Assembly (NCBI GenBank): GCA_965235115.1
Contig: OZ249436.1
Location: 16,058,001 to 16,122,000, forward strand
DNA length: 64,000 bases
Origin: Laetmonice hystrix
Lineage: Eukaryota
Reading direction: 5' to 3'
The translations under genes and the position numbers were made by a program. The first letter of the stretch is position 1, and each line of letters opens with the position of its first letter. The notes under the pieces are model-generated. The model was not told the DNA's origin. It ran no database searches and saw only the letters and a program-made list of their open reading frames with translations. Shown here piece by piece: positions 2,815 through 45,007 of the stretch.

Positions 2815-3214
2815 CCACTAAATATTGCACGGAAAAAGTAATATTGACCAGTCAATATTACTTTTGCATTGCCGTCAAGTGTTTTCACCCCTCGTGCAAA
2901 TAGGCTCCTATAGGCATTCTTAACGTAAGTTTAATAGAACAGCCTGGGGGTGACAGCGTATGATAGCAAAGCGGAAACTACGCGAGGCTGAGTTCAGAAT
3001 CTTGTATAGCCTCTAGTCTAGGCTAGCTCTAGGCCTAGCTAGATAAAGCAGTCGTGAACACGATGGATCCCTGTAGCCTATCTAATTTCCCGACATGAGA
3101 AGTTTATGTGGTGACTGATTGTTAACATTGGTCATGGTTTTGATCATGGTTTACTGGTAGAATTGTGAGTACTGACGCACTGAGGCTCAGCATACCGGTA
3201 GGCCTAGGTCTAGA

Positions 3215-4035
3215 TGTAACGTCCCTGGCCTCGTTGCCAGGTTAGCTACTGGGCTCCCAAGTCCCTTAACATGTGACACTGGATGAAAAGAACACAAACA
3301 CGCATATTTGGTAGGAAAATAACTGGTTTTATTCAAATACGGGTAGTGATAAACCTATCCTGCCTCTGATCTGAAATAGGGTTAGTACTTCTCGTTGTAT
3401 TCCTGTCGTAAAAATGAATATAATGAATATACAAGACTCAAGTCTTGTCTGAGATCCGAATATTCCATATTCGGCAGAGAACTAACCTAAAAGATCTAAC
3501 ATCTTGTTTATAATGAATTGGATCTGAATGTTCACATTCAGCTTTTTGGCCTAAATAATCAGAAAAACCCTTACTCTGGCCTTAGGCTTATGGCCATATC
3601 TGACGAGCAGACCTTACACGTATTTCCTATACGTTTCAAGCTCTGACGACAGCTTGGCATAAATTGCTGGTACAAGCATTCTTATACATGCCTATTGGCA
3701 CGTCTACCGTACATACCTGGACTTAGAGGTAGCCATTTCAGTGGTTTCGGCTTGTAAGTTACTCAGGGCAGTATTTCGTCCCTTCTTAGCTGGAGGTTTA
3801 ACGACACTCCCAGACTTATTGCAGAGACCGGGCTTTTATATCAGAGGGATATGCATATGCATGCCAGGGGAGCCAATGAGAATACGCTGGCTGACGGCGC
3901 CACTGGGCCCTGGTCAGCTGGGGGTGGGATACTTAGTCATGGGTGGCTGCACACACAGGCGATGTGTGGCCGGGGTAGCGACGTGCTTAGTGCACATGCA
4001 CTTGACACAGACGTTGGGCCAGCCCAATCGTCACA
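3215..4035 (-). repeat. 3' LTR (821 bp)
   Basis: Direct repeat of 10971-11791; minus-strand TATAAAAG at 3833-3840 and AATAAA at 3328-3333. Confidence 0.97.
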
Positions 4036-4048
4036 CACCTCCCTTTCC
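4036..4048 (-). other. Polypurine tract
   Basis: Minus strand GGAAAGGGAGGTG immediately precedes the 3' LTR. Confidence 0.9.
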
Positions 4049-4331
4049 AAAAAAGACATATGTTACACATATAACAATAGTTACTATCCTACACTAAGTT
4101 CTAGACCTACGGGTACAATAAAAGGAGCAGCATGGGTTAGGGACGACCCACTGTCCTCGACGATAATCTGAAATCAAGACAAGAGTCAACAATACAAGTC
4201 AAACAAAATGATCCAGGTTCAAATTTTAATAGGCAATATGCACAGGGTGCTCCAGACAACTCTAATTAGTCCTTTAAATGTCCCGATAAATGTTCCTGTT
4301 TGGTTGAGACACAGACAGTTAAGCCTACAAG

Positions 4332-5438
4332 TTACAACATCTCGGATGCCTGTGCCTGGCTGCGACCCTGCAGGGAGAGGGACCGGACGTCGGACGTCGT
4401 AAGTGGAAACACTTGTGTTTGTGTCAGATGGGGGTACAGCACATATCCCCTGCTAATCCTGACGTTCCTGAGGTCGGCAACTATGGATGGTCGACCCGCC
4501 CTGGACTGCTCTAGTTCGTTGTTCCTTTCTTGTAGCTCCCGGTTTTTCTGTTCCAGGCGTGTTATCTTCTCCTGGAGCTCTTGGACTTCCAAAGTCTTTA
4601 GCTTTCTCTTAAGATCGTCCCTCATCGTCCTCATCTCATGTTCCTTCCTCTCCAGGCCCCGTATGACGGTGGTGAGGACCCGTTGATCCTGGGTGTCAGG
4701 TTGATGTCCCTGGATGGCCTCCTCCAACTCCCTCTCTCCGGGTCTGGTTGAAGGGACAAGGGGTCCGCCTTTCCACACGGTCGATCTTTGTTCCGGGGGC
4801 AGTGCTCCTCCTGGCAGCTTTGTCGGAAACTGGCACGTGGTGTGTCCGGAAAAGGGGTCACAATGTGGGGTGACCGAGCCTGGTGCCTGGTACCTCACGT
4901 TTTCCCTCAAAGAACAAAACCAAACCTTGTCCTTCAGTTCCAGGGCCTTCTTGGCTTGTGCTTCATGGGCCGTGGTGATGTGCCGTTTCAAGGAACCTCG
5001 TTCTGGTGACAGGAAGCCACAGTCCGGCACTGGACACCAGTGAAGGATTATCTCTGGTTGGTGAAGATTACGCCAATGCTTGGCGAAGGCCGCATACTGC
5101 CGACTGTCTTGGCAGAGGTTCATCTGCCGGCATACTTCCACTGGACAAGGGAAGATAACTGGCTTCCCTGTCACGGTGCTCGAAATTCGTTGACACTTTT
5201 GAGCAGTGCCTTTCGGGTTGGGAATGGGTACGGTAGCCTGGCACACTTTAGCAGTGCCTTCAGCTTTAGGAGGGGTGGCCTGACACGTTAAATTCGTGCC
5301 TTTATTGCCAGGGGAATGTGGTAGGGGACTCAAGGGTGGAAAAAGGGCGCCATCATCTTCATTTAACTCATCATAATCTAATTCGACCTCCAGGGCGTCC
5401 AGTTCGGTCAGATCATGGCTAAAAAGGGAAGAGGACAT
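4332..5438 (-). CDS. Retrotransposon ORF3 of unknown function: acidic N-terminus, two C2H2-type zinc fingers, coiled coil (368 aa)
   Basis: ATG in A-rich context (ACAAAGATG) 16 nt after the pol stop; Cx4C-x17-Hx4H (aa 98-126) and Cx4C-x12-Hx4H (aa 135-158); heptad-rich helix at about aa 255-313; lies inside the LTRs. Confidence 0.8.
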   Translation of the reverse strand: MSSSLFSHDLTELDALEVELDYDELNEDDGALFPPLSPLPHSPGNKGTNLTCQATPPKAEGTAKVCQATVPIPNPKGTAQKCQRISSTVTGKPVIFPCPVEVCRQMNLCQDSRQYAAFAKHWRNLHQPEIILHWCPVPDCGFLSPERGSLKRHITTAHEAQAKKALELKDKVWFCSLRENVRYQAPGSVTPHCDPFSGHTTCQFPTKLPGGALPPEQRSTVWKGGPLVPSTRPGERELEEAIQGHQPDTQDQRVLTTVIRGLERKEHEMRTMRDDLKRKLKTLEVQELQEKITRLEQKNRELQERNNELEQSRAGRPSIVADLRNVRISRGYVLYPHLTQTQVFPLTTSDVRSLSLQGRSQAQASEML

Positions 5439-5454
5439 CTTTGTTTTATTTCAG

Positions 5455-8400
5455 TTAAAGGTCCATCCGAACTGGTGGTTTCCTTACCCTGGTGCCTCGT
5501 CTTAACGTGGTGCTGTCTGCAGTGACAGTTTTTGGGTCAGAAGGAGAGGTTTCATTCCTGTTTGGGTCAGGATTTAGACTCTCCTCTGACTCACTGTCAT
5601 CGGTTATTAGGAATGATGCATCATGCCTGTCAGGTGCTGACTCATTAACAGTCTCCTTAACTACTAACCAACTTTGTGGTGCATTGATGCCTTGGTATGG
5701 TTTCAAGGCATCCACATGTACAGTGATTACTTTACTGTGCTCTGCTTGTTGGATTTGGTAGGTGACATTAGTTAATTTCTTAACAACTAGGAATGGTCCA
5801 CGCCAGCCCTTTCCCAACTTTTCCTTCGCTTGAGGGGGGTAGTAGTGCCATACCCAGTCACCTTCTTTGAATGTACCCAAACCCGAGTCTCTATCATACA
5901 GACGTTTCTGCCTTACAGCACTTTTCTGTAGAAAAATGCGTACATATGTGAACGCTTCTTCTGTGGCCCGTCGGACCCACTGTACATACTCGATAGGGCA
6001 CCTAGCCTGATGGCTATTAGGAGGCTGCCCTACCATGACATCTAATGGTACGTTAGTCTCCCTACCCAACATAAGAAGGTTTGGAGTGCAGTTTGTGCTC
6101 TCGTGTACAGAGGCTCGGTATGCCATCATGACATACATAAGATGATCGTCCCAATCATCCCGGTTCTCATTCACATACATGGCAAGCATCTGTTGGAGGG
6201 TTCTATTAAATCGTTCTACAAGGCCATCGGACTGGGGTCTGTATGAAGTCGTTCGAGTTTTGTGCACTTGCATGAGGTCACAGATCTGTTTGAATAGATC
6301 AGATTCAAAATTTCTACCCTGATCTGAATGTAATTGTCGGGGACATCCTAAACGACTTATAAATTCCATTATACAATCAGCTACTCGCTGAGCAGTCTGA
6401 TCAGGTAATGCCCACGCTTCTGTCCACTTTGTGTAATAGTCACCTAAAACTAGGATATACTGATTGCCATTCTCTGTAATTGGTAAAGGCCCTAGAATGT
6501 CAATAGCCACTTTTTCTAATGGACTGCCAACTGCTTCTTGAGTGAGTTTAGCACGCCACCTTTTTGGACCAGGTTTTCTACGGGCACAGATGTCACATTT
6601 CTGACACCAACTGATGATGTCTCTCTTGTAACTTGGCCAATAAAACCTTTGCCTAATGTTCTTAGTCAAGCGTGTGACCCCTAAGTGACCTGCAGTACGG
6701 CTAGAGTGGAGGGAATGCAGAACCTTCTCTCGTAGTTCTGTAGGAGCTACCAGCTGCATCACTGGAATGCTACTCCCACCGGGATACCATTCTCTGTATA
6801 ACAGTCCATCCCGTACATGGAGTACCTTCCATTGTGCCCAATAAGATTTAGTAACTGCATCATATGGGGCAACCTCAGACCATCTTGGCTTTTCGTGAGA
6901 TTGCTCCTTCCACTTTAGTACCACCTGAATACAAGGATCGGCCTGTTGCCATTGTTTCAGCTGCGCCTGATCATACTGCAACAACCATTGGCCTTCACCA
7001 TTCTTTGCATCAGATTGACCAGCCTTACTGGGTACCTGCAAGTTCTGTTTTCTAGATGAATCTTTAGTTCGTCTGCCGGCCTGAACAACGTTCATCTTGT
7101 GTACAAAACAATCTGGACAGTCAACACGTCTACAACTGCGAGTTGTAGGCAACCGTGAAAGGGCATCAGCATTGGCATGTTTGGAGCCTTTACGGTGAGT
7201 AATTTGGTAATCATATGTCTCAAGTATGGTTAACCATCTAGATGTTACCTCATCATGATTAGTAAAGTTCTTTAGCCAAACCAGAGAGGCACGGTCAGTT
7301 CGGATCAGAAACTTCTGACCATATAAGTAATGCCTAAAATGCTTTACAAACTCAACTACAGCATATAGTTCTTTCTTTGTAGTGCAATAGTTCCTGCGTG
7401 ACTTATCAAGGGATTTGCTGGCATATGCAATTACACGTTCAGTACCATCTTGTACCTGATGTAACACGGCGCCGATGCCATCATTGCTGGCGTCTGTATC
7501 TAAAATAAACGTGCCCTCTTGAGTTGGATAGGCTAACACCTCAGCTGAGATTAGGCTCTGTTTTAATTTATCAAATGCTCCTTCACATTCCTCTGTCCAT
7601 TCAAATTTTACCCCTTTTCTCATCAGGTTACGAAGAGGAGCAGAAATGGTGGAAAAGTTATCTATGAACTGTCTATAATAGGAGGCGAAACCATGGAAAC
7701 TACGGACTTCTCGAGCATTACAAGGTCGAGGCCAAGTGGAGACAGCTTTGATCTTCTCAGGATCACAACTTACACCTTCTGCAGAAACGACATGACCCAG
7801 AAATTGCAACTGTCGTTTGAACAATTTGCATTTCTTGGCCTTAAGCTTAAGACCAGCATCTCTAAACCTATCAAATACCAAAGAAAGGTTAGCTAGGGTA
7901 TCTTCAAATGTCTTTCCAAAACAGATTACGTCGTCCAAATATACTAGGCATAATTGCCATTGCAAGCCACGTAGTACAAGTTCTATTAGACGCTCAAATG
8001 TAGCAGGTGCGTTTGTTAAACCGAAGGGCATGACATTAAATTGAAATAAACCCTTTCTAGTCGCAAAGGCAGTTTTTTCTTTATCCGCCTTATCCATAGG
8101 AACCTGCCAATATCCACTGGCACAATCGATTGTACAAAACCACTCAGCACCTGCTAGTGTATCTATGGTTTCGTCGATGCGTGGTAGTGGATAAGCATCC
8201 TTTTGAGTAACCTGGTTAAGTTTCCTATAGTCGACACAAAACCTAATTGTCCCGTCCTTCTTGGTTACTAAGACGATGGGTGATGCCCAGGGACTAGTGC
8301 TAGGTTCGATAACTCCCTGCTTCAGCATCTTATCAACTTCCTCATCAGCAACACTACGGCGTTGAATCGGCAAACGCCGAACTGGTTGCTTGATAGGCCT

Positions 8401-8790
8401 GCTATCTCCTGTATTGATTTTATGAGTAACTAGATTAGTACCTCCTAGTTCACCACCTGGTTCAGCAAAGATGTCTGAATAAGACAAAACCAACTTATGT
8501 ACAAGTGCAGTCTGAGCTGCAGTCAAATCCTGACTACTGTCATCTACTAATGCCTGCAGATGCTCAGGTAATACTCTACCACTGACATCTGTAGCCAAAT
8601 GTTCCTTATCTGGAGTGTACTCCAATTCTGTGAAATGTGATATGGGTTGTAGTAATGCCACAGCTACACCTTTCTTAAGGGTTACTGGTTCATTTCGGAG
8701 ATTGATAACGGTTAAAGGTACGGTTTTATTGGCTGCATTCACTAAAGCCTTACCAAAGATCACGCCTGACCTATGAGTTATGGATGCCAA
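5455..8790 (-). CDS. pol: Pol: reverse transcriptase, RNase H, integrase (1111 aa as called)
   Basis: RT YLDD and PFGL motifs; RNase H FILDTDAS; integrase H-H-C-C, DILGP, SDQGRNF, GLVER (DDE) and GPF module; no chromodomain seen. Confidence 0.97.
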   Translation of the reverse strand: MASITHRSGVIFGKALVNAANKTVPLTVINLRNEPVTLKKGVAVALLQPISHFTELEYTPDKEHLATDVSGRVLPEHLQALVDDSSQDLTAAQTALVHKLVLSYSDIFAEPGGELGGTNLVTHKINTGDSRPIKQPVRRLPIQRRSVADEEVDKMLKQGVIEPSTSPWASPIVLVTKKDGTIRFCVDYRKLNQVTQKDAYPLPRIDETIDTLAGAEWFCTIDCASGYWQVPMDKADKEKTAFATRKGLFQFNVMPFGLTNAPATFERLIELVLRGLQWQLCLVYLDDVICFGKTFEDTLANLSLVFDRFRDAGLKLKAKKCKLFKRQLQFLGHVVSAEGVSCDPEKIKAVSTWPRPCNAREVRSFHGFASYYRQFIDNFSTISAPLRNLMRKGVKFEWTEECEGAFDKLKQSLISAEVLAYPTQEGTFILDTDASNDGIGAVLHQVQDGTERVIAYASKSLDKSRRNYCTTKKELYAVVEFVKHFRHYLYGQKFLIRTDRASLVWLKNFTNHDEVTSRWLTILETYDYQITHRKGSKHANADALSRLPTTRSCRRVDCPDCFVHKMNVVQAGRRTKDSSRKQNLQVPSKAGQSDAKNGEGQWLLQYDQAQLKQWQQADPCIQVVLKWKEQSHEKPRWSEVAPYDAVTKSYWAQWKVLHVRDGLLYREWYPGGSSIPVMQLVAPTELREKVLHSLHSSRTAGHLGVTRLTKNIRQRFYWPSYKRDIISWCQKCDICARRKPGPKRWRAKLTQEAVGSPLEKVAIDILGPLPITENGNQYILVLGDYYTKWTEAWALPDQTAQRVADCIMEFISRLGCPRQLHSDQGRNFESDLFKQICDLMQVHKTRTTSYRPQSDGLVERFNRTLQQMLAMYVNENRDDWDDHLMYVMMAYRASVHESTNCTPNLLMLGRETNVPLDVMVGQPPNSHQARCPIEYVQWVRRATEEAFTYVRIFLQKSAVRQKRLYDRDSGLGTFKEGDWVWHYYPPQAKEKLGKGWRGPFLVVKKLTNVTYQIQQAEHSKVITVHVDALKPYQGINAPQSWLVVKETVNESAPDRHDASFLITDDSESEESLNPDPNRNETSPSDPKTVTADSTTLRRGTRVRKPPVRMDL

Positions 8791-9374
8791 TCTACAGCTC
8801 CTAACCCTCGAGGTATTGGCTTCCTAGAATGTTTAGCCTGAGCAATGCCTTCTACCATCATCTGACTGTCAGCTGGTATATGTATGGTGTTAGCTAAATG
8901 TACCCTGCAACAACCTTCATTGTCCTCCCTTTGCAATTGAATCTTTTGAGATCCTATCTCTAAGATACCTTTAGAGAAATCAAGTTTTGGTTGAAGCATG
9001 TCAATGAAATCTAATCCAAGCAAACCTTCCAAACTTCCTAGGTTTGAAACTAATACAGGATGTTTATATGACACATTGCCAAGTCGGATTATAGCCATGA
9101 ATTCACCTGACACATCCATTGAACTTCCATCAGCTAAGGTAAAGTTCATATTACATGGATGTAGCTGTACATCAGTCCTTTTGATTTTCTTGTAAATCGA
9201 CTGGTTAATTATCGTGCAAGACGCGCCAGTATCAACAAGAAATTTAACTTTGTGCCCGTTCACTGGAACACTCATATACCATCCATTTTGACTGTGTATC
9301 TGAAGCATTTGTTTTTGAATATTTGGCCCTTTAATCTGTCGACTGGCTGAGCTGACGGCCTCCAGGTCAGCCAA
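8778..9374 (-). CDS. pro: Aspartic protease region of pol, in the -1 frame relative to gag
   Basis: VKFLVDTGAS active-site motif and GLLGLDF flap-distal motif; no true ATG; reachable by a -1 shift at GGAAAAC at the end of gag. Confidence 0.9.
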   Translation of the reverse strand: MADLEAVSSASRQIKGPNIQKQMLQIHSQNGWYMSVPVNGHKVKFLVDTGASCTIINQSIYKKIKRTDVQLHPCNMNFTLADGSSMDVSGEFMAIIRLGNVSYKHPVLVSNLGSLEGLLGLDFIDMLQPKLDFSKGILEIGSQKIQLQREDNEGCCRVHLANTIHIPADSQMMVEGIAQAKHSRKPIPRGLGAVDWHP

Positions 9375-9376
9375 TT

Positions 9377-10654
9377 TTAGTTTTCCGAATTAGAGGCTTC
9401 AGCCTGCTCCTTATACTTTGTACAGTTTCTTTGAACATGACCTAGTTCCTTACAGTACCAGCATCTAAGGTTGCGATGCCTATTGCCTAAATCAGACCTC
9501 TGCTGTTGACTCACTGCCAGCACTGGAGGTTTCTTAGCATATGTGCTACATTCATTGAACACTTCAAAATCTACTGCGAGAGTGATGGCATCATTCATTG
9601 TCTTTGGATGGTGGAAATGTACATGTTGCCTCATTGAGTGACTCAACCCAGTTTTAAATTGATCGAGCAACCACTCTTCTTGTGCCTCTGTGCTCTGATT
9701 TGGAAATGCCCTTTTAACCAATCTTCTCAATTCATAACCATAGTCAATTAGTTTCTCATTTGGTTTTCTGAACCGTTTTCTGAATTCGGATTTATACACA
9801 TCTTCCCTGCCAGATGGGTTAAACCTGTGTGTTAGTGCTTCCACCATAGCAGCGTAACTTAACTGTAGTTCTCTGGGCAAGTTGGTTATAGTACTTCTAG
9901 CTTCTTTTGTCATGCTCATACCCAGTTGAATACCCTTTTCACTTTCAGACCACTCGTTCCATTGGCTTACTTTCTCAAAATAGTCTAAGTATTCCTGCAA
10001 ATCACTTTCACCAGTATACATCTCAGGGTCTTTCTGACGCCTCTTGATGTGTTGCTGAGATTGTGATTGCACAGGAAAATAAGACTCAGTCCTTTGTGGT
10101 TGATTCTGAATAGGTAGTGAATACGCCATTGGACTTGTGGGTTGAGTGTGGATGGGTGTTGAATACACCATTGGACCTGCTGATTGGGTGTGGATGGGTG
10201 TTGAATACACCCTTTGGCCTGTTGGTGTTTGCACACTTGTAGGATGTGCACTGTACCATCCGGCAATGGGAGGTGGTGGAGTGATCCAGGGACTGGTGTA
10301 ATTAGTGGCTTGACCTGTATTAGGCATTTGACTGGGAGTTCCAGTACTACACACTGGACCTTTGTTACTGTATGTGGGCGTGGTTACTGTGTAAGTCTCA
10401 TGAAGAGTGCCAGCTGAGTAACTGTACGCAGGTATGTGATTCTCGTGAATTGATTGGTAAGTGGGTACGGGTGCACTTGTTATTGGTAAAACTGTTTGTG
10501 CTCTCAACAGTGTTGAGTCTTCTAGGTCAGATTTTCTAACCACCCGTTCTTCCTTGTGCACAGTTAAAGGATCCCTGAGTGTATCGCTGTCAGTACTGTT
10601 TGATACGTGAAACCATTGTGAAACCGTTTCGTGTAATGATCTCCACCAAGACAT
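9377..10654 (-). CDS. gag: Gag (capsid plus CCHC nucleocapsid), 425 aa
   Basis: Capsid-like YTGESDLQEYLDYFEKVSQWNEW segment; zinc knuckle CWYCKELGHVQRNC; ends TCG GAA AAC TAA. Confidence 0.93.
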   Translation of the reverse strand: MSWWRSLHETVSQWFHVSNSTDSDTLRDPLTVHKEERVVRKSDLEDSTLLRAQTVLPITSAPVPTYQSIHENHIPAYSYSAGTLHETYTVTTPTYSNKGPVCSTGTPSQMPNTGQATNYTSPWITPPPPIAGWYSAHPTSVQTPTGQRVYSTPIHTQSAGPMVYSTPIHTQPTSPMAYSLPIQNQPQRTESYFPVQSQSQQHIKRRQKDPEMYTGESDLQEYLDYFEKVSQWNEWSESEKGIQLGMSMTKEARSTITNLPRELQLSYAAMVEALTHRFNPSGREDVYKSEFRKRFRKPNEKLIDYGYELRRLVKRAFPNQSTEAQEEWLLDQFKTGLSHSMRQHVHFHHPKTMNDAITLAVDFEVFNECSTYAKKPPVLAVSQQQRSDLGNRHRNLRCWYCKELGHVQRNCTKYKEQAEASNSEN

Positions 10655-10951
10655 CTTGACAGTATTTTCAATTATTAAATACAGTAAATATCAATTTAAT
10701 TCAAACTGATTACTCAGCTAAATATATGAACTCAGTTAAATGCAGGATAATAACAAAATAGCCTGTAAACCAATTATTGATCACAGTACCAATTTGTGTA
10801 ATTCTCCACATTTGGGCATAGTACTAAATTGTGTTTCAGTTGTGTCTCTCCATCCAGAATTAGTCACGGTACCAAACTGTGTAATTCTTCGGAATTACTT
10901 CAAAATTGGTCGCGGCACCAAATTGTGTAATTCTTCAGAATTACTTTAAAA

Positions 10952-10965
10952 TGGTCACGGCACCA
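10952..10965 (-). other. Primer-binding site complementary to the tRNA-His 3' end
   Basis: Minus strand TGGTGCCGTGACCA, 5 nt inside the 5' LTR; complementary to the ...UGGUCACGGCACCA end of metazoan tRNA-His(GUG), recalled from memory. Confidence 0.85.
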
Positions 10966-10970
10966 AATTG

Positions 10971-11791
10971 TGTAACGTCCCTGGCCTCGTTGCCAGGTTA
11001 GCTACTGGGCTCCCAAGTCCCTTAACATGTGACACTGGATGAAAAGAACACAAACACGCATATTTGGTAGGAAAATAACTGGTTTTATTCAAATACGGGT
11101 AGTGATAAACCTATCCTGCCTCTGATCTGAAATAGGGTTAGTACTTCTCGTTGTATTCCTGTCGTAAAAATGAATATAATGAATATACAAGACTCAAGTC
11201 TTGTCTGAGATCCGAATATTCCATATTCGGCAGAGAACTAACCTAAAAGATCTAACATCTTGTTTATAATGAATTGGATCTGAATGTTCACATTCAGCTT
11301 TTTGGCCTAAATAATCAGAAAAACCCTTACTCTGGCCTTAGGCTTATGGCCATATCTGACGAGCAGACCTTACACGTATTTCCTATACGTTTCAAGCTCT
11401 GACGACAGCTTGGCATAAATTGCTGGTACAAGCATTCTTATACATGCCTATTGGCACGTCTACCGTACATACCTGGACTTAGAGGTAGCCATTTCAGTGG
11501 TTTCGGCTTGTAAGTTACTCAGGGCAGTATTTCGTCCCTTCTTAGCTGGAGGTTTAACGACACTCCCAGACTTATTGCAGAGACCGGGCTTTTATATCAG
11601 AGGGATATGCATATGCATGCCAGGGGAGCCAATGAGAATACGCTGGCTGACGGCGCCACTGGGCCCTGGTCAGCTGGGGGTGGGATACTTAGTCATGGGT
11701 GGCTGCACACACAGGCGATGTGTGGCCGGGGTAGCGACGTGCTTAGTGCACATGCACTTGACACAGACGTTGGGCCAGCCCAATCGTCACA
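10971..11791 (-). repeat. 5' LTR (821 bp)
   Basis: TGTAACGTCC...TCGTCACA on +; no mismatch found by eye against 3215-4035; TATAAAAG on the minus strand at 11589-11596. Confidence 0.97.
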
Positions 11792-11870
11792 TGGAATAAA
11801 GTTAAACTGACTGTGCAGTCGTCGATGGGTCCTGGCATAGACAGGAAAAGTGCGGCAGTCATAAAATAAA

Positions 11871-12013: not shown

Positions 12014-13205
12014 ATATTATAGCTCAGCATCGTGATGTACTTGGCACGAGGCTAGCCGCCTATACACAGTGGTGAAGTATTGGAGTAGAGCCCAAAACGG
12101 TCACCGCTGGCAGCGCTCCAGCGTCGTCTGCTACCATATTTTACTTTTATAATATATGTATATAATAAAAATAAAAAACAAAACGAGTAAATTTGTTCTC
12201 TTTTTATTTTGTTTTTGCTGGTACCATACAAGAATGCACTTGCTGGAGTATACAGCTACAGAAACAGTCGGCCAATTAAAAAAGGGACCCATTTTTCATC
12301 GCACTGATCTCCCTCGTGACACACCCAGAGAATGAGCTGTGAATGGGACCGATGTTTTCTAAAGGTGACAGTGTTTCTCATCGATGTTAGCATTAACTCC
12401 ACAACACTACACTAAAGTGTCGGATGAGAAACACGACATTGTCGGGCACCCAGTTTGGCGACTGTATAGGACTACATGCATGGCACATCGGCAGTCCACA
12501 AGTGGCTACGATCTAGCGTTGAGGCGGCCTTAGACATGTCCAAAACTCTTCTTTTTTCATAATTACAGTACTATAATACATACACCCTGATATCAGAATC
12601 AGGTGTCAAGAAACCATCAAATACAATTCGCCCCCTGTGCTTAAATAGACCTCTGTTAGTACTTAATGTACATTCAATTGAATTCAGTCAACTGTCAGGG
12701 GGAGACTCTGAGAGCCTATCTCGTAATGAAGCTTTACAAATACATCATACCTCTGACCAGATTAAGCACACTTTACTTAATCCTACCGACTAAAGGCTTC
12801 ATTGGAGTCAGTAGGGGACGCAAAGACCTACAATTTAAGATAAGGGCAGCTGATTTGCATGAAGGGTCATCAATAAATATACAGAATGTTTCATTCCTCT
12901 TTAAATATAGGCCAGTTGAAAGCCTGTCTGAGAGCACTGGAGTGGTGTCTTGATGTTAACTCCACTGATTTCTCAGTCCAGACATCTGTCCCTGTGTGGA
13001 TGGTGCCCGTCCTTCGTGCCTTTTATTAATGGATTCCACACCGGTCAGCTGTGGCGAGGGCAGAACACGCGTACAATGAAACGTACTAGCTGACAATGAC
13101 AGTGATTACCAAACGCAATGAAGATATCGTTGATATATACATGTCCATTATAGAGCCACTCTCAAGAGATACTGGCAGATGAAGCTTCCTCGGTGGATCG
13201 GTCGC

Positions 13206-13730
13206 CTGGTATTATCGTCTGATCAGGAGCGGCTTCTCTTGATACACAACTGGAGCCTGGTATGATCAGGACGGGCTTCCCTTGATACACAACTGGAGCC
13301 TGGTATGATCAGGACGGGCTTCCCTTGATACACAACTGGAGCCTGGTATGATCAGGACGGGCTTCCCTTGATACACAACTGGAGCCTGGTATGATCAGGA
13401 CGGGCTTCCCTTGATACACAACTGGAGCCTGGTATGATCAGGACGGGCTTCCCTTGATACACAACTGGAGCCTGGTATGATCAGGACGGGCTTCCCTTGA
13501 TACACAACTGGAGCCTGGTATGATCAGGATGGGCTTCCCTTGATACACAACTGGAGCCTGGTATGATCAGGACGGGCTTCCCTTGATACACAACTGGAGC
13601 CTGGTATGATCAGGACGGGCTTCCCTTGATACACAACTGGAGCCTGGTATGATCAGGACGGGCTTCCCTTGATACACAACTGGAGCCTGGTTTGATCAGG
13701 ATCCGATGGGCTTCATTCGATACACAACTC
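13206..13730. repeat. 43-bp minisatellite, about 12 copies
   Basis: Unit GATACACAACTGGAGCCTGGTATGATCAGGACGGGCTTCCCTT; period 43 from 13241 to 13671, with degenerate flanking copies. Confidence 0.95.
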
Positions 13731-16700
13731 GATAAACTTGCAAAAACAGCCTCATACAATAGAGGATAAAATCTTCTGATGTGGTTGTGGGATGGGCTTG
13801 CAGACTATTAATATGGTGCTTATACATTGATTGGGTGGACAAACATCTATTTACAATCACATCTTGAAAATTCCTGCACAGGACAAACTGTACCTGTGCA
13901 GATGTAAAGGGAACCAACTCGGCTTAATGTTCTCTCGCTGGAGTTCAACATTAACTACTGATGAGAGCAATCAGTACCAGAACAACTCTCCCTTAACACA
14001 GGTACCAGGAATTTCAGCTGCAACGCTACAGCAAAACCTTATGAACTATGTACGCATACATACATGAGCACTGGGACCCTCGGCTTTCTTTGTAACATAC
14101 CTGGGGTAGGTACGTTTGGCTTTTGGCAGAGTGTGTCTGGACAGGTAAACTACCGTTAAGATGTTGGTTGGCGTGTACCTTGGCAAGGGCACGCACCTTT
14201 AGCTATGTCTACAGAGGAACGTCTAACCTTTTGTTGGGCAGTGTACACGGACTGCAACAACGCTACCCACTGCACACACTGCGAACATTCAGTGTCTCAG
14301 AACCCAGATAAATACCCTTTCAAAGTTTCCTTTTCTCATGGCTGTTTTCCAATTTCACTATGGTGCCAAAAGCACCATTCAGGACTACTCCCCGGTCCTG
14401 GTGCCTTGTATTTATCGACCACAGACTATGAAATCACGTGCTAAATTACGTGTTACTTTATTGGGTAGCAAGAACATGCAGAGATCTGGTACAAGCAAAA
14501 CCAGTCGGTGTAAAATGCTCCTGTTACACAAGACAAAAATTAAGAGATGATGGTGCATCTATTCCCAAAATACCCACTGCTGAGGGTCTGACGTTGTCAA
14601 GGTCAGCAAAGCATCTAATTAGGTAATTCAAAATTCATTAAAAATGACGCCAGTATGCTGGGACTGTCCACGAGAGTCAGAAACTAGTTCTCACTGATCT
14701 ACAACACACACTGAGTGGATGATGCTGAAGGCGCTACACATCCTGGACGAGTGTTTGCAGTGTGCAAGTACCAGTCGACATAAAGACCACAGGTATGGAA
14801 ATATTTCATTCACGTGAACAAAGAGGTCAGGAAATATCCTTTCTGACTGATGCTGCTAGACAACTAACGACAAGAGCACATTCTTGTATTCCTACAAGGT
14901 GTCTTATCATGCCTGCACTTCTAATACTGTTTCATTGCGTACTTCTTTTTACGGCAGCAAGTGATAAAATTCGCATGCAGTTCACCCATCTGGTCCATTG
15001 TTATACATTGTACATTATGTACTTGGGGGTTTTTCCCCCTGTTTTTTAGGGGGGAGGGTGAAGAATTCCCTTTGGGGATGGGAAGTAAGCCATTCATTAA
15101 CAGTCTCTTATTACTCTACTAGATATACCATCTAGGTCAATGCTTTCCAATCTGAAATCTTAACTTTCAATATTCTAGTTTTTAGATTACAAAAATTCCA
15201 AAGAAAATAATCCTCTAGAATTCTTGGTTTCAGTTGGAACGCAATGTGAGACGCTAACCCGTTGCCAAGATGCCGGTGTGGCAGCTTGTCCTTGATGAGA
15301 CAACAGTTCAAGCCCCACAGTGGTTTTTGAATCAATGGTTGACAGCGGCACAATGAGGAAGGCACGTCTCTGTCCATACACTCGACAAACAGCTCTGCAA
15401 CAACTCTGATCAGTCATTGTCGGTTCTCAGATTGTCTCCTCCCACTATCCATAAAGCATGTGGAGACCACGATTCCAAAGAGATTTGAGAAAAAAAGGAA
15501 CATACGGTAAAGGGCTATACTTGTTTTATAGTTTGGTTCAGTAGCATTTTGGGCAGAGGTCAAGTTTGGTGGCAGAAAAAAAAGAAAAATATTTTAAAAA
15601 CCAAATTCTGTTCTGAATGTTTTTTTTGTTTTGTTTTTTTTGTTTGTTTTCTTTGCGGTTTTTTTTTTTCACTGGGGAGGTGTTAAGTACAAATTGGTGT
15701 TAAAGTTCACTTCCAGTATGGTAGAATGAAGGTGCTGGTTGTGACGTCAAAGTACTCGGTCAGACATCAACTAGCCATAAAATCTGTATTTTCCTTCAGT
15801 TATCAGGGTGGGGTTAGCAATGTCCCTGTTGTCTCTGGTCCATCAAAGTCCGCTACCTGACCACCAAGAATACTCGACACTACTTCAGAAAATATAAAAA
15901 CAATATCTAGAAGCATTTTTGAACGACTTAAAAAGAACTTAACATTACACAATATGGTTTAGGCGGCAAACACATGAATGCCTGAATGACCATTTCTTTG
16001 ATCATTTTGACCACAAGTGCAACGGACCACCAATATTCATTGGATATTATTACTGGTACTTTAAGCCCTAGCTATAAAATTGACCAGTACGCTACCCATG
16101 TAGATCTACTTCCCAAATATACTCCTGAGAAACCAATCCTGGCTTTCAATTGCACATCATGCCATGAATCCTAGAAGTCGCCCTCACTGACACAAGTCCA
16201 TATCCAACTCAGTGACCCTCAAGGGTTCCTCACAGACACTACACTGGATGCTCACGTGTACTTCATAAGCATCAGACTTGTAATGTGGATGACATTTGCA
16301 CAACTTGCCAGTGGGATCTGACACGGGATACACGCGGATATTTAGTAGAAGGCATGGCAGCTTGGAGAGTGAGCACTGCACCCAAAACGTCCCGCAGCCA
16401 AACAGCTCTTCTGTCTTTCCAAGCCTCGTGTCTTATAACGTAAATACACGCAACAACATACATACTTACATACACTTACATTACATGCTGGCTCAAGTTC
16501 ACATATTACACTGTACATTATTAACTGGGGTTATATCCACCTCCTGAGCTTACAACAGTTATTCTATAGAAGACTACTGAGAGGGTTCCACTCAGTGGGG
16601 AACTGCCGACCAGAGCCCACTGGGTGGGACCGTCCTTGGAGACACCGGTCTCCGTAGCCATAGCTGGGCAAGTGCAATGTACAACCAACAAGGCTTCACC

Positions 16701-42400: not shown

Positions 42401-45007
42401 AGATATCTGGTTGATCTATCCCCTTGATATCCACCTAAAGTTATATAAATGGTATCAGTATCACAAACCATATCACACAATGAACATAGTGAAATAAACG
42501 ACTAATGATTGTTATTTTATGGCTAATGAAAATAAAATGAATGTGGCTGATCAATACTGTGTTCAGTTAGCCACACTGGCTAATGATTTTGAAATCCTAG
42601 CGAGATCCCTGCATACATATTTTCAATGGCCTGCATCTCCAAAACAATTTAAGATAATATTGCATGAAATATTTTAATCCGGGACGGTCTTAGAATGATA
42701 CAGGCCAAACATATTTTTAATATAATTAAAAATGGTGGCTTGGTGACCATCTGGATTTCTTTCACTTCAGACTTGGTAACAATACATATTAGAGGCAAGG
42801 ATAATAACATAGGATAGAACTTGGTAAAACTATGAACATGGTTTTAATATAACTCATGAGGTTGAAAGTGTGCAAAACTGGTCCAGCATAAGTAGGTCAG
42901 CAGGCCCCTAACTAGCCCATGATCCTTGAAGTGAAAGTATGGCGAGGGGTAAAAGAAATATTACCAATAACCCATTTTTTCTCTAGAAATAGATTGACTC
43001 AGGGGAATAGAGTTTGTTTCATTATGATCAACCTTTGTACAGTTTAAAGGAGTTTATAAAATCAGCAGTTTCCATTATGGTGTGGTGTATATTGCACCAA
43101 CATAACAATATTCTATGCCCTAAGATCAGACAGCCTTATTACGGTGTAAAGTGACGTGTGCCAATATTGAGGATGATACAATATAGAAAAAAATAACAAT
43201 ACGGATGCATCCATTTATTATTGCTAATAGATGTATAGAGAATGATAACAAGTTGACAGGTTCTGTTGGACAGAGTCAGTTCTGGAGTGGTTAAATAAAA
43301 CCAAATCATTGCGTGACTCTGAACTCCTTCCTCTTGTACAGTCCCCCATATTACATGGTTGTAGTGATAGGCTGATAGCACAGGATAGGTAGCCACAGCT
43401 GGGATGTCACAGCCCAGAGTAGGGGACATTATTATATACCTGTACCAGTAAATGTGGTGTACTGTCAATGTTTTGATAGAGGCAACAGTACTGTGTATAG
43501 AGCAGTGACTACAACAGCGTGCAGCATGTACTCCAACAGTCAACTCTTATGTTCAGTTCAGTCTGATGCAATTATTATTAAGCATGGGTTCAAGCGGTCA
43601 AGCCACTTGCTCTTCATTCGACTATTACCGGTACTTGGGGGATATTAGCCAGGACAGTTTTGACCACCTGACCCCATTTCCAACCCCTGCCAGTCCTTTG
43701 TACAATTTGTACCATATCCATTCTCAGCTATCAATTTGACCTAATTGTTGCATGTGACTAATAAGTACCGTTGTAGTTCAAATTCTTTTATCTTTTCAGA
43801 TCGTTGTAATGATGGCACATCAATGTGGGTGCCCTTTCAAAACTCAGCTAGTGGTGTAACAATAATGTATAAGGGTAAGTATTTGGAGAGAGCAAGGGTA
43901 ATCTTTTCATTTAAAATATTAAGAGTGACATTTGGTAATTTAAACAGGCTAAAAGATGTTGTCAGTATAAATATTACAGACATGCAAAATAGTATAAGCC
44001 CCAATCAGGAGGTAATGGGATTTTGTACATTGACTTGCATTCCAGTACATTGCAATATTTTGTATGCTGTTTTACTTAAAAATGACATTTTTATCACTTC
44101 ACTTGAAAATATGATTAAAATATTATAATTAGTAAATAATGAATTATGATAATGTGTGTCACCAACTTTGATACAAAGAAAATGTTTTATTCTATGTTAC
44201 AGATAGCTTGGATGTAATGAAGAAGAGCTTTGAATTGGGAATAGCATGTGGCCATCATAGACGTAATCGTGATATGTTGAATTGGGTCAAGAAACGCAGA
44301 CGCCATATTCGTAGAGAAGACCTGATAGCTTATTTGTGTGGAAAGAACGCGCCTGTACGTGCAAGACCACCGTCAACGCTTGGTTGGGCAGGTGCACGAG
44401 TAGTGGATAGAGCAACTCCAAGACTTCCAAGTGTGGTGGAGGCAAGAGAGGAAAACGATGGCATGACGGATCTACAACCCTTTAGAGATGCTTTGGCATT
44501 GCAAAGTATGACAAATATTCCTAGACCATCATATTAGATCATTAAAAGAGAAAGTTAAGAGTTATTTGTTAGTTCATATTGGTAGAAATTGCATCCAAAA
44601 TTTGATACATTATCAAGACATGCTAGAATAACATGTTTGGTGTTCAGTGAATACATAAGCGATTAAAACGGATTGTTTGAGTCAAAACAACTATGTTGTA
44701 GCTTGGTATTATTATATTCAATATCAGACAATATATCCAGAGTTTGAAAAAGTGACAAGTAACATCCTCTTCTATTTCAGGGCTGAATGGTGCTATGTCC
44801 AATATAAGTATGGGATTTCAGTCATGCAGTCCAGCTGCTGCCTCGACAGAAAATATTGAAGCCAATCAGCGTGCTGAGCCTGAAGATGACTTCCATTGTT
44901 TTATACTTGATGAGATGTCACGGAGATGTGACAACAGTCGAAAAAGAACCCCTAGTTCAGATGTGCGTATGGATTCACCAACGCGCAAGAGGAGTCGTCT
45001 ACTATGA
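39266..45007 (+). CDS. HAPSTR1: HAPSTR1 / C16orf72 / TAPR1 orthologue, 4 exons, 266 aa
   Basis: Exons 39266-39461, 43800-43874, 44203-44505 and 44781-45007 sum to 801 nt in phase. QKLWLSFQNSATAIAQLY, WVPFQNSA, WVKKRRRHIRREDLIAYLCGK, DLQPFRDALAL and the C-terminal SPTRKRSRLL match the recalled human protein. Confidence 0.95.
41047..41258. mobile_element. CAGG-ended MITE
   Basis: TIR CAGGCCTGAT(A/T)TTAAG; flanks CTGTG/TTGTG (5 bp, 4/5); internal CGAACG repeats. Confidence 0.68.
41322..41440. mobile_element. Small CAGGG-ended MITE
   Basis: TIR CAGGGTTTCCTG; perfect 5-bp flanking duplication CTTAA. Confidence 0.7.
43800..43874 (+). CDS. HAPSTR1: HAPSTR1 exon 2
   Basis: DRCNDGTSMWVPFQNSASGVTIMYK; TTTTCAG acceptor and GTAAG donor. 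Confidence 0.93.
44203..44505 (+). CDS. HAPSTR1: HAPSTR1 exon 3
   Basis: DSLDVMKKSFELGIACGHHRRNRDMLNWVKKRRR...DLQPFRDALALQ; GTATGA donor. Confidence 0.93.
44781..45007 (+). CDS. HAPSTR1: HAPSTR1 exon 4
   Basis: LNGAMSNISMG...FILDEM...RKRT...DSPTRKRSRLL*. Confidence 0.93.

Follow-up and report, generated by a model that had tools for sequence, protein, structure and literature searches.

A conserved non-envelope gene behind pol, predicted to encode two C2H2 fingers and a leucine zipper, in a clade of Ty3/Gypsy retrotransposons

Results

A young Ty3/Gypsy element with a third gene

The window (the whole 64-kb stretch of DNA analysed here) contains a complete LTR retrotransposon, present as a single copy and oriented on the minus strand (Table 1). 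Two TG...CA LTRs, a PBS, a PPT and the Pfam domain order gag, PR, RT, RNase H, IN identify it as a member of Ty3/Gypsy (Metaviridae). The two LTRs, which a first-pass annotation of this DNA had read as identical, indeed show 0 differences over 821 bp; the element is a young Ty3/Gypsy retrotransposon. The 5′ LTR carries a TATA-like box at LTR position 196 and an AATAAA signal at position 703. No target-site duplication of 4-6 bp is visible, the flanks reading TTCCA and TCTAG; this hints that copies have recombined or that the assembly was joined here, and leaves the classification unaffected. Troyka elements (PMC12440569) were considered as a home for the element and ruled out, as their termini are CG...CG and their duplications 3 bp long.

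The pol domains score well above the Pfam cut-offs. In gag, the CCHC knuckle just passes (21.5 vs 20.8 bits) and the capsid-type matches fall below the cut-off. The stretch that the first-pass annotation called pol uses more than one frame. A scan for programmed frameshifting found no canonical slippery heptamer in either frame overlap. The pol product is about 50% identical to Gypsy pol proteins annotated as bivalve, and 49-54% identical to the pol of relatives L001, L004, L005 and L007. The 46-nt leader repeat is private to the window element, no leader tandem repeats being found in L001, L005 or L007. The window yielded no tRNA genes with which to compare the PBS-like motif and no Rfam matches, nor were Pfam matches of ten flanking ORFs informative.

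Table 1. Features of the retrotransposon and of its third gene, in window coordinates.
Feature	Position	Strand	Remarks
Complete Ty3/Gypsy LTR retrotransposon	3215..11791	-	8577 bp; direct repeats at 7756-nt offset
5′ LTR	10971..11791	-	821 bp, TG...CA; 100% identical to 3′ LTR
Leader tandem repeat	10858..10975	-	46 nt x 2.6 copies; reiterates PBS-like motif
PBS-like 13-mer	10953..10965	-	Starts TGG; 5 nt past 5′ LTR
gag	9377..10654	-	425 aa; Ty3-type capsid and one CCHC knuckle (Pfam)
pro-pol, two frames	5455..9374	-	Aspartic protease, RT, RNase H, integrase (H2C2, core, p58-C/SH3)
RT-RNase H-integrase ORF	5455..8790	-	
Candidate 3′ splice-site region for ORF3 mRNA	5439..5540	-	AG directly before ATG; pyrimidine-tract CAG at about 5517
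ORF3	4332..5438 (stop codon included)	-	368-aa accessory protein; ATG start, no internal stop
ORF3 acidic N-terminal stretch	5349..5411	-	aa 10-30; predicted disordered
ORF3 compact zinc-finger-containing domain	4734..5171	-	aa 90-235; domain model pLDDT 88.3, pTM 0.77
ORF3 zinc fingers 1 and 2	4965..5147	-	
ORF3 coiled coil	4506..4694	-	aa 249-311; single predicted helix; profile matches GCN4 and other coiled coils
ORF3 C-terminal domain	4335..4487	-	aa 318-368; small beta-hairpin and helix
Polypurine tract	4036..4048	-	Directly abuts 3′ LTR
3′ LTR	3215..4035	-	821 bp; direct-repeat match, TG...CA ends

Parts of the ORF3 protein

Between pol and the PPT, on the same strand, lies an intact frame, ORF3, which starts 16 nt past the stop of the RT-RNase H-integrase ORF and ends 296 nt before the 3′ LTR. 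The first-pass annotation had assigned to it 368 codons, an acidic stretch, three KGT..CQ repeats, two zinc fingers and a long coiled coil, and had seen no signal peptide, furin site or transmembrane helix; all of these readings were reproduced. The acidic stretch has 10 D/E per 20 residues; its acidic-aromatic D-Y-D-E motif is found again in many of the relatives. The three KGT..CQ repeats (aa 46-83), also predicted to be disordered, are confined to the closest subfamily. The predicted zinc ligands are C98/C103/H121/H126 in finger 1 and C135/C140/H153/H158 in finger 2. Finger 2 has the classical C-x4-C-x12-H-x4-H spacing; in finger 1 the C-to-H spacer measures 17 residues, against about 11-13 in most relatives in the alignment. 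A basic cluster that precedes finger 1 in most relatives is absent from the window protein.

In the coiled coil, hydrophobic residues occupy heptad positions a and d at aa 285-309, forming a predicted four-leucine zipper (L288, L295, L302, L309) in which Asn takes two of the a positions; a short KRK cluster precedes it. Matches to this region are of the generic coiled-coil kind, and among the Pfam results listed at E<=1, which cover all those of the window protein and the 25 families shared most widely, there is no bZIP model. The C-terminal leucines were considered as a nuclear-export signal, a reading rejected for their non-canonical spacing and for the structure predicted in that segment.

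ORF3 belongs to an unnamed family set behind pol

ORF3 is a real gene of the element, conserved and not an env. A search with the ORF3 profile gave 58 matches among 1.84 billion representatives; with the family alignment as query, a word-indexed search found 2 proteins only. No Pfam family reaches threshold for ORF3, no named homologue was found, and none of the family members looked up has an NCBI or UniRef entry. The family into which ORF3 falls is unnamed, and its genes follow pol throughout a clade of related elements. The element families that bear it come from marine assemblies and metagenomes, including Tara Oceans contigs; two metagenome-contig scans and one viral-contig scan yielded no further DNA copies.

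Identity among ORF3 homologues is as low as 23% and at most 57% (53% for the closest relative, P0001), and because length, zinc ligands and architecture are kept at this distance, the gene stands far beyond chance. Seven ORF3s are available with their DNA; these contain no stops over 328-399 codons despite 23-36% identity. Pairs with DNA share <=36% protein identity and their synonymous sites are saturated, while pairs within 90% clusters differ by 1-3 residues. The first-pass annotation had asked whether homologues would sit between pol and the 3′ LTR: in 6/7 contexts examined, with one exception, ORF3 is the next gene on the 3′ side of pol and has the same orientation. All three closest pol relatives examined carry a third ORF, and the two with DNA have the same finger module (hhalign probability 98% and 97%). 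The closest pol relatives L005 and L007 keep the fingers and the coiled coil and lack the C-terminal domain. This pattern indicates that the clade-wide core is the finger module rather than the C-terminal domain.

The window protein displays the full set of family features, namely an acidic N-terminus, a two-finger domain with its Trp, a coiled coil, a C-terminal domain and a post-pol position. As far as sequence can tell, the combination of acidic N-terminus, two C2H2 fingers and coiled coil is a real layout, conserved across the clade. Outside the zinc ligands, the C-terminal domain provides the family's longest strongly conserved run (16 columns with one residue at >=75%), and the C-terminal Leu is conserved at 87%.

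Expression of ORF3

Two routes to ORF3 translation had been put forward in the first-pass annotation, reinitiation after the pol stop and splicing to an acceptor at about 5517. The pol-to-ORF3 gap differs widely between relatives (16-566 nt), which argues against obligatory termination-reinitiation. An AG is found 0-6 nt upstream of the candidate start ATG in 5/5 core-family loci, a count that for L001 and L003 uses an ATG upstream of the called start (in L001 one that is out of frame with it). The adjacency of AG and candidate ATG mildly favours a spliced subgenomic ORF3 mRNA. The acceptors of the window itself are weak, as none within 130 nt of the ORF3 ATG, the site at about 5517 included, has >=13/20 pyrimidines; T-rich YAG sites occur 0-28 nt before the ATG in relatives L001, L003 and L004. 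A 5′ splice donor in the LTR (a good match, situated past the TATA-like box and after a short ATG-led frame) was also considered. Joined by eye to either candidate acceptor, it produced no in-frame run into ORF3; no relative supports it, and it was dropped.

Relationship of the finger module to known zinc fingers

Comparison of the ORF3 family profile with the PDB identified the fingers of TFIIIA (E=3.6e-5 and 1.7e-4), and the profile also matches those of YY1, GLI, CTCF and Tramtrack. With both ORF3 models, Foldseek ranks tandem C2H2 fingers that bind DNA highest (Tramtrack, for instance, with rmsd 1.8 Å over 51 columns), but at E values of 0.6-1, which are not significant. None of the Pfam zf-C2H2-type models reaches its gathering score for ORF3. 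Finger-type matches to Sina/Siah and Di19 were obtained for several family members, all weak and below threshold.

With the classical C2H2 domains of TFIIIA, Tramtrack, YY1 and CTCF, ORF3 has in common the ligand spacing of finger 2 and the modelled beta-beta-alpha fold. It differs from them in having two fingers only, no TGEKP-type linker, a long finger 1 spacer and an invariant Trp past the first His (a feature of the fingers throughout the ORF3 family), and in that the finger pair is packed into a larger domain. Conservation of the eight zinc-ligand columns across the family is 96-100%. In both fingers, helix positions -1, 2, 3 and 6 are instead hypervariable, with 8-14 residue types each.

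Discussion

A candidate self-encoded regulator

Our best explanation, offered tentatively and at somewhat short of even confidence, is that ORF3 is a lineage-specific accessory gene of a metazoan Ty3/Gypsy clade and serves as a self-encoded regulator acting through nucleic-acid recognition. In such a scheme, ORF3 would probably have a subgenomic mRNA to itself, most likely produced by splicing. The protein would be soluble and probably nuclear, and is predicted to pair through its leucine zipper so as to present two C2H2 fingers per subunit. These fingers may recognise nucleic acid of their own element, in the preferred version by sequence-specific binding to its LTR or leader DNA. The acidic N-terminus could recruit host transcription machinery, with activation of the LTR as a speculative target function. 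The protein is laid out much like a transcription factor, with its acidic N-terminus, the basic clusters that most relatives have ahead of finger 1 and the heptads with Asn at two a positions of the window protein's zipper. Separate expression agrees with the variable gap behind pol, with the AG beside a candidate ATG and with the GC3 of ORF3, which exceeds that of gag/pol in 5/5 elements.

The hypervariability of the finger helices is what would be expected if each subfamily read its own target sequence, but it could also be a simple lack of constraint. No candidate binding site common to the elements, whether repeated or palindromic, was found. Further points speak against a regulator of this kind: the Foldseek E values are not significant and Pfam finger models stay below threshold; the fingers are embedded in what is modelled as a larger compact domain of unassigned fold, and are perhaps not free to wrap DNA; fingers of the TFIIIA type bind RNA too, and the weak Sina and Di19 matches point to protein-binding fingers; and the window protein has no basic cluster ahead of finger 1. 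The most specific form of the proposal, namely that a marine-animal Ty3/Gypsy clade encodes a sequence-specific dimeric zinc-finger transcription factor whose fingers are tuned per subfamily to its own LTR, is for now doubtful. If it were true, "complex" Metaviridae with a Tas/Tax-like transactivator would be seen here for the first time, and the elements would offer a natural pool of co-evolving pairs of finger and target. The first-pass annotation had proposed a transcription activator, nucleic-acid chaperone or anti-silencing factor; judged on sequence features, which do not distinguish binding of DNA from that of RNA or protein, a regulatory role for ORF3 is plausible, with an RNA role of the Rev or CERV type as a serious rival.

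Other readings of ORF3

The RNA role just mentioned, which we consider rather unlikely while giving it more weight than any other alternative, would make ORF3 a factor like Rev, Rex or CERV of Cer1: a multimeric nuclear finger protein acting on the unspliced, A/T-rich gag-pol RNA and aiding export, stability or packaging of genomic RNA. TFIIIA-type fingers bind RNA as well as DNA, and TFIIIA, a binder of DNA and 5S RNA, is the best sequence match of the finger profile. In 5/5 elements with DNA, moreover, GC3 of ORF3 exceeds that of gag/pol by 9-20 points, an excess that would fit a regulator mRNA needing no aid as opposed to an A/T-rich genomic RNA in need of help. CERV, too, is encoded by its element without being an env, and has a leucine-zipper coiled coil, a putative Cys-rich finger and a predicted ability to multimerise (PMC10309623). 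Against these points, ORF3 contains no arginine-rich motif, RRM, KH or CCHC module and no clear nuclear-export signal, an export factor would be unnecessary if the genomic RNA is intronless, and no CERV-like homology is detectable. CERV was compared by description; neither ORF3 model has a G-domain-like fold or a GTPase match in Foldseek.

It is unlikely, though still worth weighing, that ORF3 is a protein-protein adaptor, whose fingers and C-terminal domain would bind host or element proteins (integrase, capsid, chromatin or silencing factors) and thereby steer integration-site choice, capsid trafficking or escape from silencing. The conserved run and the terminal Leu of the C-terminal domain suggest a fixed protein partner more than a variable nucleic-acid target, and both the Sina/Siah and Di19 matches and the inclusion of the finger pair in a larger compact domain would agree with such a function. 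The same matches, however, are all below threshold, L005 and L007 dispense with the C-terminal domain while keeping fingers and coiled coil, and no partner can be named.

The GC3 offset, together with the lack of a Pfam family or named homologue, could also be taken as the mark of a chance ORF or of a recently captured host gene fragment without a role in the element. This is very improbable. The offset recurs in all five elements and is hence no sign of recent capture, and same-position homologues accompany pol sequences diverged to about 50%. Between the window element and L001, identity amounts to 25% for ORF3, 29% for gag and 54% for pol; since ORF3 diverges at about the rate of gag and sits behind pol in 6/7 relatives examined, recent capture of a host gene, an outcome that the first-pass annotation had named as fatal to its proposal, is not what is observed. 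Least credible of all is the reading usually given to a Gypsy third ORF, a protein of the envelope or otherwise of membrane fusion, for which nothing speaks except the position between pol and the 3′ LTR: an errantivirus-type env is ruled out by the lack of a signal peptide, TM anchor, furin site (no R-x-K/R-R in the window protein) and class I/III fusogen fold, hydrophobic segments are absent (Kyte-Doolittle means over 19 residues peak at 0.95 in the window protein and stay <1.6 in 25/26 family members), the confidently modelled parts are zinc fingers and coiled coil, and the PDB and viral-structure searches returned no fusogen, a fold whose discovery would have counted against the first-pass proposal as well.

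Significance

The usual annotation of an LTR retrotransposon lists gag-pol and, in some cases, env; in the present clade a non-env third gene has been kept behind pol, and its retention spans a divergence as deep as that of gag, across many element families. Non-env accessory ORFs are already known in LTR retrotransposons; what is new is a family of proteins with two C2H2 fingers and a leucine zipper encoded behind pol. For annotators, the finger module provides a clade marker, and the family a caution that not every post-pol ORF is "env-like". Should ORF3 control how its own element is transcribed or what becomes of its RNA, complex retroviruses and Cer1 would not be alone in encoding their own regulation, and a regulator of this sort would bear on the origin of retroviral accessory genes.

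Comparison with known systems

Tas/Bel1 of spumaviruses and Tax of deltaretroviruses are encoded by extra genes 3′ of pol or env and expressed from subgenomic RNA. By functional analogy, ORF3 may be likened to them in combining an acidic region, a nucleic-acid- or factor-binding region and an oligomerisation region. PDB and viral-structure searches revealed no similarity in sequence or fold to Tax, Tas or any other named regulator, and the window element, as opposed to the carriers of Tas and Tax, has no env.

The first-pass annotation had taken it as known that third ORFs of Ty3/Gypsy errantiviruses encode membrane env proteins and that simple Gypsy elements encode gag and pol only. This was too narrow (PMC5408684, PMC10309623, PMC7264820, PMC11952523), and its picture of a unique "complex" retrotransposon was overstated in view of the precedents set by CERV, the bdelloid ORF3s, the additional ORFs of plants and sORF2 of Drosophila. 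Plant LTR retrotransposons carry additional ORFs (reviewed in PMC7264820; Retand, PMC11963269); the Drosophila MDG1 group has sORF2, whose product is short, transmembrane and fusogen-like (PMC11952523). Like ORF3, these are lineage-conserved accessory ORFs beside gag-pol, some of them nuclear and with their own transcripts; their host kingdoms or clades differ from those of ORF3, and a literature search found no report of tandem C2H2 fingers with a leucine zipper for either group. In bdelloid rotifers, the ORF3s of LTR retrotransposons are non-env genes for a GDSL esterase and a DEDDy exonuclease (PMC5408684). They occupy the same position as the window ORF3 and illustrate that LTR elements acquire and keep non-env third ORFs. 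The bdelloid proteins, however, are enzymes with recognisable homologues, common to other retroelement classes, whereas the window ORF3 is non-enzymatic and falls in no recognised family.

A close parallel in protein make-up comes from CERV of the C. elegans element Cer1. CERV is a nuclear protein that combines an M ring domain, a GTPase-like G domain and a finger of the C4 type, and is reported to be required for export of genomic RNA; its spliced mRNA has five exons, the N-terminal ones common with gag, and overlaps gag-pol (PMC10309623). ORF3, by contrast, is a stand-alone ORF past pol; it lacks a G domain and has a pair of C2H2 fingers. Beyond the zipper, finger and predicted multimerisation noted above, the two have in common that they are non-env accessory proteins of Gypsy-type elements, each confined to its own lineage and without homologues outside it.

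A Ty3/Gypsy element with an additional ORF

The element, 8577 bp long and the sole copy within the window, is bounded by LTRs that form a direct repeat at a 7756-nt offset and show no differences. On the minus strand, both start with TG and finish with CA. The PBS position, 5 nt past the 5′ LTR, is occupied by a 13-nt motif with TGG first, and a purine run adjoins the 3′ LTR. Four long minus-strand ORFs were listed in the inter-LTR interval. Pfam identified a Ty3-type capsid and one CCHC knuckle in the gag ORF, an aspartic protease in the second ORF and RT, RNase H and integrase in the third (the pol-region ORF, with scores far above cut-offs), and assigned no family to the fourth (ORF3, 368 codons). 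ORF3 starts 16 nt past the pol stop, and 296 nt separate its end from the 3′ LTR. The first-pass annotation had described it as an env-position ORF within identical LTRs. The acidic stretch, three short repeats, two fingers and coiled coil that it had placed along the protein are all present where it put them.

Features in and around the element
Feature	Position	Strand	Description
3′ LTR	3215-4035	-	direct repeat; 821 bp
ORF3	4332-5438	-	368 codons
gag / protease / RT-RNaseH-integrase	5455-10654	-	three frames
gag interior repeat	10118-10211		42-nt unit, 2.2 copies
leader repeat	10858-10975		46-nt tandem repeat, 2.6 copies; repeats the PBS-like motif
5′ LTR	10971-11791	-	direct repeat; 821 bp
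ATG-led frame in 5′ LTR (same in 3′ LTR)	11467-11492		six codons, leading into a good 5′ splice-site match
tandem array	13131-13787		43-nt unit, ~15 copies (central copies 97-100% alike); 1.3 kb off the element
TAPR1-like ORF	43745-44125	+	127 aa; weak Pfam match (E=4.4e-5), below cut-off

Some peculiarities of this copy deserve mention. The gag-pol region contains two frame changes, each -1 relative to the preceding ORF, and a canonical slippery heptamer is absent from both overlaps. Protease and RT share a single ORF in the relatives with an intact pro-pol (four of the six examined), with gag joined too in two. The arrangement in the window may be a programmed one, the result of mutation or an error of assembly. 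The tandem repeat of the leader, which creates three to four TGG-led PBS-like sequences, is absent from three related loci (L001, L005 and L007). No target-site duplication was seen at the element flanks (3195-3214 and 11792-11811, TTCCA/TCTAG), despite the identical LTRs; inter-copy recombination, deletion on insertion or an assembly join could account for this. Among ten flanking ORFs, the TAPR1-like frame provides the only Pfam hint of a host gene.

ORF3 is not an envelope gene

The claim in the first-pass annotation that ORF3 is not env was borne out by hydropathy, a furin-site search and structure prediction. Kyte-Doolittle hydropathy peaks at a 19-residue mean of 0.95, well below the 1.6 customary for a membrane helix, and the protein contains no R-x-K/R-R site. 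AlphaFold2, supplied with 26 family sequences, produced a model (mean pLDDT 75.6) with a disordered segment (residues 1-87), confident regions at 90-190 and 210-230, one long helix (249-311) and, at 330-353, a small beta-hairpin followed by a helix. No fusion protein was matched when this model was compared by Foldseek to the PDB and to predicted viral structures; a viral fusogen fold was the outcome that would have spoken against the original proposal. The top local matches were tandem C2H2 fingers. An env reading was thus rejected for want of a membrane helix, a furin-like site or a fusion-protein match.

A conserved ORF3 family in a clade of elements

A word-indexed search of 5.8 billion proteins returned one relative of ORF3 (P0001, 53% identity). 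A profile search reading all 1.84 billion representatives identified 58 family proteins at E≤0.001, many of them 320-345 aa long and matching end to end. The sequences originate from ENA assemblies with megabase contigs, JGI metagenomes and Logan assemblies, the sampling reflecting the contents of protein collections only. None of the members is named, and the 11 clusters checked lack both NCBI and UniRef accessions. The 26 aligned sequences, 19-57% identical to the window protein, have a common architecture. In six of seven members, the ORF lies directly 3′ of a pol/integrase ORF on the same strand (gaps of 174, 59, 26, 56, 79 and 51 nt), the placement that the first-pass annotation had proposed to look for; one of the loci, L001, is a 7.8-kb contig whose gag, pol and ORF3 make up an almost complete element. 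The remaining member, P0126, is a decaying copy, as its region is rearranged, the upstream pol ORF is absent and part of the coiled coil is lost. A chance ORF is rejected by the conserved family and syntenic placement.

Relatives of the window pol include bivalve-named sequences and marine metagenome contigs, which suggests a marine invertebrate as host. Three of the closest, chosen without regard to ORF3 and including one from a Tara Oceans marine metagenome, all carry a third ORF downstream of pol, 378-449 aa in length. In the two with DNA, L005 and L007, this ORF contains a finger module matching the family profile (hhalign 98%, E=5e-14, and 97%, E=6.5e-11), then a coiled coil, without the C-terminal domain; the L005 protein has an acidic, D-Y-containing N-terminus. 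Therefore, the finger-bearing ORF3 characterizes the clade as a whole and is not peculiar to this copy.

Identity between the window element and L001 is 54% in pol, 29% in gag and 25% in ORF3; the rate of ORF3 evolution is thus close to that of gag, and this within the element lineage. All seven ORF3s with DNA are open (328-399 codons), the pairs being too diverged or nearly identical for formal dN/dS. In the 26-sequence alignment, each of the eight zinc ligands is kept in 96-100% of sequences and the Trp after the first His in 100%; helix positions -1, 2, 3 and 6 of each finger show 8-14 residue types each. In classical fingers these positions contact bases. The a/d heptad positions in 285-309 are hydrophobic, and 16 columns of the C-terminal 50 residues have one residue at a share of at least 75%. 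The N-termini in the alignment are unreliable because, for some relatives, the gene caller behind the public collections chose starts that are not ATG or lie too far downstream: in locus L003 (374-388) the called start is preceded, 15 nt upstream, by an in-frame ATG directly after a T-rich TAG, and the other locus of this kind is L001 (5850-5877).

Searching all PDB sequences with the family profile matched the finger region to TFIIIA (E=3.6e-5 and 1.7e-4), as well as to YY1, GLI, CTCF, Tramtrack and KLF4, and the helix to GCN4 and other coiled coils. Modeled alone, residues 88-235 (pLDDT 88.3, pTM 0.77) form one compact domain in which an extra helix and strand pack with the two fingers. Its top Foldseek matches were Tramtrack (rmsd 1.8 Å over 51 columns) and CTCF. 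Neither E-value was significant, which we ascribe to the small size of finger domains. Pfam finger models scored below threshold (weak zf-Di19 in six members, Sina_ZnF in three). These comparisons identify the predicted fingers, with high confidence, as C2H2-type. Searches against PDB and Pfam revealed no known counterpart for the remainder of the finger domain or the C-terminal domain.

Expression of ORF3

Reinitiation after the pol stop, one of two routes suggested initially, fares poorly: the spacing between pol and ORF3 is anywhere between 16 and 566 nt among members of the clade, which misfits an obligatory stop-start mechanism. Each of the five core-family loci has an AG 0-6 nt upstream of a candidate start ATG; in L001, L003 and L004 this AG follows a T-rich tract, resembling a 3′ splice site. 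The candidate ATG is upstream of the called start in L003 (in frame) and L001 (out of frame). The window has two weak acceptor candidates, an AG immediately adjoining the ATG on its 5′ side and a CAG at ~5517. The latter, suggested in the first-pass annotation, does exist; both lack a tract with 13 or more pyrimidines in 20. No 5′ splice donor was backed by any tool or relative. Judging from these sequence features, a spliced subgenomic mRNA would be the likeliest expression route. The splice-site match in the LTR is ~90-100 nt downstream of a TATA-like box, and its short frame is out of frame with ORF3 at either candidate acceptor.

ORF3 GC3 exceeds that of gag/pol by 9-20 points in all five elements with DNA. 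As these elements are so diverged, recent capture does not account for the offset. A lasting difference in expression or selection between the two parts of the element is indicated, perhaps because ORF3 has an expression regime of its own; the offset would suit an early product made separately, and is no proof of function.

GC3 of ORF3 and gag/pol (window: 4335-5438 versus 5458-10654)
Element	ORF3	gag/pol
window	0.58	0.38
L001	0.44	0.35
L004	0.57	0.48
L005	0.63	0.50
L007	0.65	0.47

Possible roles of ORF3

The layout of ORF3 is that of a dimeric transcription factor: an acidic, aromatic-containing N-terminus, a basic cluster ahead of the fingers in most relatives, two predicted C2H2 fingers whose recognition positions vary, and a predicted leucine zipper in which Asn occupies a positions. 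We tentatively propose that ORF3 may be a self-encoded regulator binding the element's own DNA. The same components would also suit an RNA factor resembling Rev or CERV, the accessory protein of Cer1; this reading, favored by the TFIIIA likeness of the fingers and the GC3 contrast with gag/pol, we consider a less likely but serious rival. A role as protein adaptor, suggested by the strongly conserved C-terminal domain, appears somewhat less likely still, the closest pol relatives doing without that domain.

Comparison with known elements

Full-text literature searches brought up no C2H2 plus leucine-zipper ORF3, prior annotation in Repbase or Dfam being possible, and a keyword search of a survey of env-bearing metazoan Gypsy elements (PMC13524379) gave no mention of a finger ORF3. 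Third ORFs other than env are already well documented: those of bdelloid elements encode GDSL and DEDDy enzymes (PMC5408684), Cer1 carries the non-env accessory gene CERV (PMC10309623), plant elements have additional ORFs (PMC7264820, PMC11963269) and the Drosophila MDG1 group has sORF2 (PMC11952523). The finger/zipper ORF3 is a further form of such genes.
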